Shown: piece by piece, positions 16,940-19,210 of the stretch
Numbering within the stretch: position 1 is the stretch's first letter
Layout: every line of letters starts with the position of its first letter
NCBI RefSeq assembly: GCF_036321535.1
Contig: NC_087472.1
Coordinates: 4,712,001-4,776,000 of the forward strand
DNA: 64,000 bases
Reading direction: 5' to 3'
Source: Camelus dromedarius
Taxonomy: Eukaryota
Position numbers and translations under genes: made by a program
Notes under the pieces: model-generated
Databases searched by the model: none
Told to the model about the DNA's origin: nothing
What the model saw: only the letters and a program-made list of their open reading frames with translations

Positions 16940-17579
16940 GCCAGACTTGCAGCCGGGCTCCTTCCAGGCCCCTGTCCGGCAGCTTCTCCTGTCGGGCCGG
17001 AAGTGAGTCCATCCTTCACTGTGTGTTTGGAGAGCGAGCAGGCAGCCTCCTAAGGGGTGACAGCCCGGGCCAGTTGGGGGTACACGGTGCACAGCATCTC
17101 TGGGCTCCTCCCGTCCCTTATGATGACATGGAAATTGATCTTTGTTTCCTGTAGGAATTTTTCAGTGGTGTTCCTTGTATCAGAAGATTTAATAAGCTTC
17201 ACTATCTAACTTTGTCAATGACATTAATCACAATGTCTGTATCCTTATCGAGTTCAAACACAAGAGATTTGCTCTTTTGTAAAACAAGTTATAAATCTCC
17301 CATCTTATTGTGTCATCCTGAACAAGATAACATGGAATTAGAATTTGGGGGAGCAATGAGAAGAAAATGTCTCCCTCCCTGGGCCTCGCCCCAAGTGCCC
17401 TGAAGAGGGACGTCGGTTCCTCGGAAATGCTCAGCCAGCGCGACCCAGTTGACTCTGGGTCCACGTGCTGATATCGCCTCCGTCTCTAGTGGTTGTGACC
17501 TTGAATAACCATGTTCTCTTAGGGGCAGGCCTGGTTTATGGAAGGGAAGACATCTGTGTGCTTCTCTCTTTGTGCACAG

Positions 17580-17803
17580 GGCTCGTTGACGTTGGGGACA
17601 CTTTGCTGTGCCCAGAAAACTTAGGTCCCGAGGAGGTTGTGGAACTGGAGAATCGAGCCGTCCTGACCAACCTGCAGCAGAAGTACCTGACCACGCTCTC
17701 CAACCCCCGGTGGTTACTGGAGCCCGTGCCCAGGAGAGGCGGGAAGGGCATCTTCCAGGTAGACGTCCCCAAGCACCTGATCCCCTTTGGGCAAGAGGCC
17801 TGA
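17580..17803 (+). pseudogene. EOLA1: Isolated last coding exon of EOLA1/EOLA2 (CXorf40), C-terminal half of the ASCH-type domain; 5' exons not in the window
   Basis: [74 protein letters not shown] closely matches the human EOLA1 C-terminus as I recall it. Acceptor ctctctttgtgcacag| at 17578-17579. Confidence 0.9.
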
Positions 17804-19071
17804 GCAGCGTGGGCTCTTGAGAGGAGGTGACCGAGAGACCAAGCTAAACCGTGGCACGGTCAGCTCGCCGTCACGCCCTGGACGTGCCCCCCTGGTTCGC
17901 TCTGAATCGGCGCCGCCCTGGAGGGCGCTCCCCACTCTGTGCTGTTCCCGGAAACAGATGTGTCCACCGGGACGCGGGGACGGGGGAGCGGGACCCCTGC
18001 AGGGAGATGCCTCCCTGGGCTCGGTGACAGAGTCTCAAGGACTTTGGACCTCTAGGACAAGGGGAAGCGGCCTTGCAGGCCGCTGCTCATTCTGGCCCTG
18101 CTGATTCTGGATTGTGTAGAGAAATGTGTTTTGAGAGAGCTGGTGAGTGTTCTCCCCGCCTTTGTTCTGGTCAAAACCCCTAGAGGGTCTGAAGAGCATC
18201 CAGGAGACGATGTGGGACGGCTGGAGCGGGCGCTGAGTGCTTGCCAGGGAGTCACCAGCCAGCGACGGCCTGACTCCCGGGCAAGAGGACGTCGGACTCA
18301 GAAAGAGCACCGTCTGCCTCGCAGATGACTCTCGCCCTGTTGTAAAGTGTCCCTTGGCTCACGGAGCCGGTGTGTTAGACGTGCCGCACGGCCGCTTCAC
18401 GTCCCAAGAAAGGGTCCTAACTACAGCCCTGATGGAAGTGAGCAGTGCTGGTGTTCGCTGGGTGGGAGATCTTTTATACATTTGTGGGGGGGGGTGGGGT
18501 TGGTCACTTGAGAGTAGGGTTTCCAGTGGTTGCTACCTTCGAGGGTGACGGGCCTCCCCCCAGGCGTTTGACTGCAACCCCCCGTCTCTTCGGAGCCAGG
18601 CTGCAGTGCTCTCAGCCCTTGGTGGAGGGGGTGGCCCTACTTTTCGGCGGGCCTCCGTGGGGGGCCCCTGGATCGTGAGCTGGAGACGCTGAGCTGCTGA
18701 TCAGAAACTTCTGGCATCCTTGCGGGACCCAGGAGGAAGACCCTCCTGCTCCGCGATGCATGAGTAATGGGGGGGAGACACCCCCGAGGTCAGAAGCCAG
18801 GCTGTCTGTCCCCTGACGGGCAGGCCCGGCCCAGCGGACCAGACCTTCCTGGGCTCGCCTCAGTGCTCGCTCCCCACCTCCTTGGGCGGGTGTCCGAGAT
18901 GCCACAGCTTCAGATGCAAGAGGCCGATGGGGACCAAAGCCTGCCCCCGGCCGGGGTCTCCAGCCTCCGCGGGCTTATCTGGTGAGAGGTGTGCGGAATC
19001 GAACGCGAGAAAGAACACGGACCCGCGGGTCTCGCAGATTGTTTATTTAGTCCCGGGGAGTTTTGCTTTTC

Positions 19072-19080
19072 TTTATTAAA
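19072..19080. terminator. Overlapping poly(A) signals: AATAAA on - (19072-19077) and ATTAAA on + (19075-19080); second minus-strand AATAAA at 19042-19047
   Basis: Sequence ctttattaaa lies between the convergent EOLA-type 3'UTR and the HSFX 3'UTR. Confidence 0.6.
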
Positions 19081-19210
19081 GCCCAAAATGTTCATGGTTA
19101 CAGGACGGTGCTCTTCGTGTGTCTCTAGTGGTCTGTGAGCTCAGCGCTTTGGGTTGTTCTGGAACTGTTCGCAGAGAGCACACTTGTAATCTGAAGAGCC
19201 CTCGGGCTCT

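Follow-up and report, generated by a model that had tools for sequence, protein, structure and literature searches.

Does a MAGE gene whose 3' end runs into the last exon of another gene encode a chimeric protein, does it borrow a transcript end, or does the join simply mark the edge of a rearrangement? The question is raised by a locus on the dromedary X chromosome (GCA_036321535.1, CM070346.1:4,712,001-4,776,000). This stretch of 64,000 nucleotides is referred to here as the window, and positions without a prefix refer to it. In it, the 3' untranslated region (3'UTR) of a MAGE-A8-like gene, designated G2, is joined to the C-terminal exon of EOLA (CXorf40). An initial annotation, made from the letters alone, proposed that G2 mRNA may continue for about 2 kb through EOLA sequence as a new 3'UTR, and that the germline cassette array could splice onto the EOLA exon, giving a chimeric unit. 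At closer inspection the feature is real but ordinary: a gene duplicated in part, at the boundary of a segmental duplication in an ampliconic region of the X. Taken as a whole, we hold with good confidence that the locus is explained by an old duplication edge, an exon kept intact by gene conversion and a borrowed end for G2 transcripts.

G2 (15956-16939, plus strand) encodes a 327-residue product with Pfam MAGE_N and MAGE domains, and exactly this product is annotated at CM070346.1:4,727,956-4,728,939 in GCA_036321535.1; the corresponding chromosomal locus (L004, CM070346.1:4,717,956-4,738,939) is identical to the window over 20,984 nt. With its promoter cassettes, coding sequence (CDS) and shortened 3'UTR, G2 occupies the left arm of an inverted repeat (9121-17370, plus strand), the partner arm of which (64000-56320) carries the MAGE gene G5. 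By window self-BLAST, 13902-17370 matches 59792-56320 at 93.8% and 9121-14595 matches 64000-58512 at 96.2%. The likeness breaks off exactly at 17370/56320, four bases ahead of an AATAAA that is still present in G5 (56311-56316, minus strand). In the pairwise alignment the common tail ends ...GAAGAAAATGT, after which G5 reads AAGAATAAA, including its AATAAA, and G2 reads CTCCCTCCC, which is not the G5 tail. G2 has lost its own poly(A) signal at this sharp rearrangement junction, its 3'UTR (16940-17370, plus strand) being severed 4 nt short of the ancestral AATAAA position. An alignment of five sequences (the window, CamDro3, which is the older dromedary assembly, intact EOLA1, intact EOLA2 and G5) reveals one filler base at the join, a C at 17371 unlike either parent, and no microhomology.

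Beyond the filler base, the sequence is the end of an EOLA gene on the plus strand. The final 208 nt of an EOLA intron of about 800 nt, with the polypyrimidine tract and the acceptor AG, lie at 17372-17579 and align with positions 10845-11052 of the intact EOLA2 and EOLA1 loci (L002 and L003). The coding part of the last exon (17580-17803) consists of the remaining 2 nt of a split Gly codon, 73 codons and the stop, free of internal stops and frameshifts. It is followed by the full EOLA 3'UTR (17804-19110), in which the signal ATTAAA occupies 19075-19080 and poly(A) is added at 19098-19110. The exon product is 100% identical to the C-terminal residues of isoform X1 of RefSeq dromedary EOLA2 (P0084) and matches the human and mouse EOLA1/CXorf40 structures with E = 3e-35 (PDB 5y7d); the 73-residue product was assigned to no Pfam family, the fragment being shorter than the ASCH model needs. 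In a complete EOLA (ASCH-domain) gene this exon would be preceded, on the same strand, by one that codes for the N terminus (about residues 1-85), and that exon is missing from the window: in tblastn neither ten EOLA homologues nor the camel proteins P0084 and P0087 gave anything significant for exon 1 there, the last exon alone being matched. With the camel proteins, exon 1 was found in L001 (CamDro3), L002 and L003. A signal scan of the plus strand found no AATAAA or ATTAAA between the G2 stop and the ATTAAA at 19075, the upstream signals being the weak TATAAA at 17290 and AAGAAA at 17361. Thus the MAGE signal has been lost and a functional signal lies downstream on the same strand. An Rfam scan of 16900-19400 returned a single match, far below threshold. 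The initial annotation had described the break with G5 four bases before its AATAAA, some 210 nt of presumed EOLA intron, an intact acceptor at 17579, an undisrupted C-terminal exon, no 5' exon in the window and no plus-strand signal before 19075, and each of these observations was reproduced.

The same annotation called the exon an orphan, which is true of the window and untrue of the chromosome. A complete EOLA2 gene (L002) lies at 4,694,152-4,695,816 on the plus strand, with a recorded range of 1,665 bp. Its exon 1 is 17.6 kb ahead of the window start; the gene has a last exon of its own, which precedes the window copy by 34.4 kb on the same strand. EOLA1 (L003) lies near 5.03 Mb, about 0.3 Mb away and in inverted orientation. 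The annotation had suggested locating the full parental gene. Full-length camel EOLA proteins, 158 residues long, came up when the exon product was searched exhaustively against proteins and then through a word index. EOLA2 exon 1 occupies L002:10001-10255, and the alignment with the window begins only at L002:10845, which is window position 17372. From there onward identity is 99.6% over 10.8 kb with L002 (L002:10845-21665 against 17372-28206) and 99.4% over 18.3 kb with L003, and the window has no counterpart of their exon 1, of the first ~590 nt of the intron or of the 10 kb upstream. The window copy is accordingly near-identical to a full parent on one side of a sharp break and unrelated to it on the other, as a partial duplicate is. 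Moreover, self-BLAST shows that window positions 1-6626 recur at 34416-41024 with 99.56% identity. Taken together, the two sets of repeats lead to two direct copies of what appears, from these alignments, to be a unit of about 23.6 kb: unit A from the EOLA2 intron to window position 6626, and unit B at 17372-41024 (plus strand, ~23.65 kb). Unit A was read from both ends, the middle between the end of L002 and the window start excepted, and the lengths of the two units agree within ~20 nt. Unit B has the orphan exon as its first feature and the junction 17370/17372 as its left boundary.

The same breakpoint recurs in other assemblies and in another species. It is present in CamDro3 (L001 and L007). 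In the newer dromedary assembly a second, inverted copy near 4.885 Mb (L006, CM070346.1:4,865,481-4,886,299) spans the junction with 99.4% identity over 17.1 kb and has an intact EOLA open reading frame (ORF), in which a single Val is replaced by Ala. The junction is also found in five alpaca loci (L008-L012, GCA_048564905.1), to which window positions 16900-19200 align collinearly at ~96%; L011 and L012 may be one locus filed twice, and four alpaca loci were aligned at the breakpoint. All four have the identical filler base, as does L006. Alpaca loci L008, L011 and L012 also keep the minus-strand HSF gene, the minus-strand downstream MAGE gene and the ATTAAA signal. A hippopotamus MAGE cluster was compared as well: past the breakpoint its 3' flank still matches the G5-type tail, the match to G2 gives out near 17345, and no EOLA exon was found within 30 kb. 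Because the hippopotamus homology follows the G5-type tail, the G5 state is ancestral; because the breakpoint is identical in the dromedary copies, CamDro3 and the five alpaca loci, the junction predates the camel/alpaca split. The two lineages parted on the order of 16-25 million years ago. The MAGE::EOLA module has a single origin, earlier than this split, and was amplified afterwards: at least two module copies were read in the dromedary, and five alpaca loci carry it. A single-intron reconstruction of the HSFX-like CDS, aimed at counting module copies, gave no solution, and exact-product look-ups gave no match for P0006, for a 277-residue version of the MAGE gene G3 or for P0229. We found no description of this camelid junction in the literature searched.

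Two of the copies have peculiarities of their own. In L006 the gene in the G2 position (19738-20819, minus strand) is annotated with a 535-residue product, against 327 residues for G2, and its changes relative to G2 cluster around the window-equivalent positions 16085-16204. In alpaca L009 and L010 the likeness to the EOLA 3'UTR is lost past window-equivalent 18545, and no HSF gene was called downstream; here a second breakpoint, specific to alpaca, has taken away the ATTAAA site.

How has an exon without a gene kept a perfect frame for so long? Within the dromedary, the orphan and EOLA2 differ at none of the 224 coding nucleotides and by no substitution in 1291 aligned 3'UTR bases, the one indel being the length of a G-run at 18486. 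The intron remnant differs at 3 of 208 positions (17374, 17381 and 17427), all within 56 nt of the junction. Position 17374 is C in all camel and alpaca junction copies and A in the intact introns. Between camel and alpaca, the orphan copies differ by 4.3% in the intron remnant, by 2.7-4.0% in the CDS (6-9 of 224 nt) and by 3.0-3.5% in the 3'UTR; that is, the coding part is conserved no better than its non-coding flanks. Indeed, 7 nt and 5 residues differ in the coding part between the camel orphan and alpaca L008. The alpaca intact EOLA2 isoform P0229 has three lineage-specific residues (Ser, Arg and Val) in common with the alpaca orphan copies, a comparison made for the intact gene as protein only, which counts as a weakness of this argument. 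Given a single old origin and the likeness within species, these data indicate that orphan and intact copies have been evolving in concert within each lineage by gene conversion, with tracts that would rarely reach the homology edge. Since the exon is homogenised in this way, its intact frame is no evidence of translation; the pattern indicates that the orphan ORF is kept intact by conversion from selected parents and not by selection on the orphan ORF itself. The suggestion in the initial annotation that this copy be examined for constraint could be followed as far as the camel/alpaca comparison, in which the signal is too small and is confounded by gene conversion.

Two further observations concern exchange among these copies. 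Between P0084 and P0229 there are no differences in the 85 exon-1 residues and 3 in the ~59 last-exon residues included in the X2 isoform, so that the half of EOLA with extra (orphan) conversion partners is the more changed half. In addition, a contig of the DNA run X15 (17091-17370) has the G2-type letters at 17250, 17267, 17274 and 17291 followed by the G5-type tail with its AATAAA, and a contig of the RNA run X1 has the G5-type letters at the same four positions followed by the EOLA junction. These 3'UTR variants are shuffled, whether through gene conversion between the two arms or through additional paralogues.

Transcription was assessed in four runs placed on 15350-19400 as Logan contigs: the RNA runs X1, X2 and X3, from three studies, and the DNA run X15. 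In X1-X3 a long contig covers the region from 17579 on, and the loose end there (...GAGAAGTTTGGCCGCGGAGTCATAGCT) corresponds to the close of EOLA exon 1, which means that ordinary EOLA mRNA makes use of this acceptor. The long contigs carry 17780 A>G (Ile>Val), which is the residue of Bactrian and wild-camel EOLA (P0085/P0086). Besides these, unspliced contigs cross the junction in all three RNA runs: 17086-17608 in X1, at a word depth of 15 compared with 74 on the exon; 16836-17411 in X3, at a depth of 23; and 17082-17392 in X2, at a depth of 6. Because a depth of 15 on low-copy genomic sequence, in a run of only 178 M letters, is beyond DNA carry-over, the junction is transcribed in the X1 sample. 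In X1 and X3 depth is flat from the G2 3'UTR through the junction into the intron remnant. Poly(A) tails in X3 begin at 19098, 19100 and 19110, and none of the run contigs has a poly(A)-tailed end near 17300-17400. The unspliced crossing of the junction fits G2 transcripts running on to the EOLA poly(A) site, as in the earlier suggestion that G2 mRNA may run ~2 kb through EOLA sequence.

Two features of these runs are separate from the crossing itself. In X3, word depth at 18861-19090 is 4,500-14,000, against ~190 on the rest of the exon. Because no Rfam family matches and poly(A)-tailed contigs lie just downstream, this 100-fold spike is likely to reflect a 3'-end-biased library and not a small RNA. 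Loose ends at 15598-15607 in X2 were considered as possible splicing and rejected, as they match G1 and G4 (4133 and 38531) and represent paralogue divergence.

We propose that the camelid counterpart of the human Xq28 EOLA-HSFX-MAGEA ampliconic region holds an old segmental duplication, the left edge of which is the junction 17370/17372. The unit, ~23.6 kb in dromedary, starting 208 nt ahead of the EOLA last exon and holding this exon, its 3'UTR, the HSFX-like gene and more MAGE genes, was joined, through a single filler base and without microhomology, to the 3'UTR of a MAGE-A8-like gene at a point 4 nt short of the AATAAA. The resulting module multiplied after its single origin before the camel/alpaca split. 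Gene conversion from the selected parent genes keeps the orphan exon near-identical to them, and thereby intact, without any coding role of the exon itself. Lacking a poly(A) signal of their own, G2-type MAGE transcripts would run on, unspliced, through the intron remnant and the EOLA exon and would end at the EOLA ATTAAA/poly(A) site, with a 3'UTR of ~2.2 kb and no fusion protein. The data show the structure, its age, its copies, their homogenisation and RNA across the junction; that this RNA is sense-strand G2 mRNA ending at 19100 we infer, and a borrowed EOLA 3'UTR and terminator for G2 is likely.

Several points weigh against this account of the RNA. Logan contigs record that a sequence is present; they give neither its strand nor the ends of the molecules, and they do not tie the crossing RNA to the G2 CDS. 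The X2 contig reaches only 22 nt past the junction. The crossing contigs come from Bactrian-type or unlabelled samples, so that dromedary G2 itself is not shown, and since the exon and 3'UTR equal those of EOLA2 save for one G-run, reads there are unassignable to the orphan copy. Some G2 transcripts could end ahead of the junction, at the TATAAA at 17290 or the AAGAAA at 17361. In the DNA run X15, no shown contig bridges 17370, the loose ends leading to the G5-type AATAAA tail and to the intact intron; a missing bridge is expected at a branching repeat, yet it gives no independent DNA confirmation. The junction could on these grounds be inert for G2, with its mRNAs ending at the weak signals before 17370 and the crossing RNA being noise, antisense or another paralogue's pre-mRNA, an idea to which the low junction depth (8-20% of the EOLA exon depth) also lends itself. 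We regard it as rather unlikely. The poly(A)-tailed ends that X3 does show are at 19098-19110 and not ahead of the junction, and depth stays flat into the intron remnant in X1 and X3. The junction is conserved, as is the EOLA poly(A) signal in alpaca L008, L011 and L012. Moreover, the HSFX-like gene has its own minus-strand AATAAA signals (19077-19072 and 19047-19042), overlapping the EOLA-type signal, and antisense read-through is therefore a less likely source. The ampliconic, repeat-rich setting and the unbridged X15 contigs might instead suggest a false join in the assembly. This has next to no probability and was rejected: the same breakpoint occurs independently in two dromedary assemblies (twice in one), in five alpaca loci and in RNA-run contigs from other animals.

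The window exon might also serve EOLA2 as an alternative distal last exon, with exon 1, 35 kb upstream, splicing over G1 and G2 into 17580. The strand and the intact acceptor would allow this, RNA cannot exclude it with a sequence identical to the proximal exon, and the gap-ridden CamDro3 scaffold places EOLA exon 1 only 11.5 kb upstream, with G2 between. We nonetheless think it highly improbable, as EOLA2 has its own last exon ~800 nt past exon 1, with the same strong poly(A) site, and a recorded range of only 1,665 bp. The CamDro3 layout is itself misleading. Its locus (L001, CM016663.2:5,169,809-5,200,965), which differs from the newer assembly at ~1.4% of positions, mostly by single-base indels, runs from EOLA exon 1 (L001:9165-9419) through N gaps (L001:9534-10235) to G2-type MAGE sequence and the junction, and collapses two duplicated units. 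The public chimeric models KAB1253406.1 and KAB1253407.1, named "Melanoma-associated antigen 8" (UniRef A0A5N4C3J7), stem from there, and they count in favour of a true chimeric gene, in which MAGE exons or promoter cassettes would splice to 17580 or to an internal acceptor and yield a fusion protein. Both join a cryptic donor at 16609/16610, in the MAGE domain, to an AG inside the EOLA exon, and both are in frame only through a 3-nt deletion and a 1-nt insertion in CamDro3. Applied to the window, these splice sites shift the frame and run into a stop after 13 codons, so that no open frame crosses the join. These CamDro3 "MAGEA8" proteins are artefacts. A chimeric gene could still point to the acceptor and ORF, intact in each camel and alpaca copy read, and to a weak cryptic donor at 16607/16608 that is in frame with 17580; in-frame donors toward 17580 match at most 5 of 9 consensus positions. 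However, no MAGE-to-EOLA splice joint was found in the X1-X3 contigs, which can miss rare isoforms, and all spliced contigs entering 17580 come from EOLA exon 1. Database searches gave no further MAGE-EOLA chimera, the remaining matches being plain EOLA proteins, and the orphan CDS diverges about as fast as the non-coding flanks. We therefore set aside the earlier proposal that the germline cassette array could splice onto the EOLA exon, and judge a true chimeric gene very doubtful. Equally slim is the chance that low-level splicing in the male germ line, for example from 16607/16608 to 17580, gives a camelid-specific protein with a MAGE N terminus and an EOLA-ASCH C terminus, in which case the amplification would be a mark of selection for that product or for the 3'UTR derived from EOLA.

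The sequence downstream of the junction retains further EOLA features. The HSFX-like gene (19141-20646, minus strand), with a predicted 362-residue product, was called with an HSF_DNA-bind domain in L004 and L005 and converges on the EOLA exon. Just past its stop at 19141, positions 19072-19080 (TTTATTAAA) read as the EOLA-type ATTAAA on the plus strand and as AATAAA on the minus strand, with the second minus-strand AATAAA beyond. The convergent EOLA-type and HSFX-like genes share a bidirectional terminator, overlapping by a few tens of bases. An internal donor in the EOLA exon (CAG/GTAGAC at 17756-17760) and, 7.8 kb downstream, a micro-exon (ag/GAACAGCACTGA, 25629-25642) correspond to EOLA isoform X2, and both elements are retained in the orphan copy. 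The coding part of this alternative terminal micro-exon (25631-25642, plus strand) is GAA CAG CAC TGA, i.e., EQH and a stop. The annotated isoforms P0100, P0101 and P0103 end ...GIFQEQH, and the EOLA1 range in L003 ends at the equivalent place. The micro-exon sits just past the 3' end of the minus-strand MAGE gene G3.

The closest known system is the human Xq28 inverted duplication of EOLA1/EOLA2 (CXorf40A/B), HSFX and MAGEA9/MAGEA8, for which the published order is CXorf40A, MAGEA9B, HSFX2 ... HSFX, MAGEA9, MAGEA8, CXorf40B (PMC3467283). The same gene families stand together there in ampliconic inverted repeats. The camel module has the order MAGE (plus), EOLA exon (plus), HSFX (minus), MAGE (minus), and, compared by published order, it differs from Xq28 in that the breakpoint lies in the EOLA intron and several copies hold only the terminal exon, behind a MAGE gene without a poly(A) signal. 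With truncated duplicates at segmental-duplication edges it shares the intronic breakpoint, the full parent nearby and the high identity between units; with cases of terminal-exon or poly(A)-site capture it shares a shortened copy lying co-oriented behind another gene, where it can supply a transcript end. Unlike typical truncated duplicates, the camel junction is old, being found in camel and alpaca, the module has been re-amplified, and the support is for a non-coding role only, as 3'UTR and terminator. Concerted evolution by gene conversion is well documented in X ampliconic families (PMC13616518). The locus resembles ampliconic families and palindromes on the X and Y in that its paralogues are much closer inside one species than orthologous copies are between species, and differences persist only at the homology edge. 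In contrast to those cases, conversion here passively preserves the ORF of a non-functional exon fragment, the donor being a selected gene. The CamDro3 models resemble the proposed fusion in locus and in their EOLA C terminus, and differ from it in their cryptic sites, their dependence on assembly indels, their lack of an open frame on the window and their lack of RNA support.

These results explain an apparent MAGE::EOLA fusion as the boundary of a duplication, which has been mapped precisely and dated and is amplified. In kind the locus is ordinary, and it opens no new mechanism. What sets it apart is that it is old, common to camels and alpaca, re-amplified and homogenised against its parent. 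The frame of the orphan exon has stayed perfect since before the camel/alpaca split by way of conversion, and an intact ORF is accordingly not proof of function. If G2-type MAGE genes do depend on the EOLA terminator, the locus would offer, in an ampliconic family expressed in the germ line, a compact natural instance of a rearranged gene that has captured a poly(A) site.

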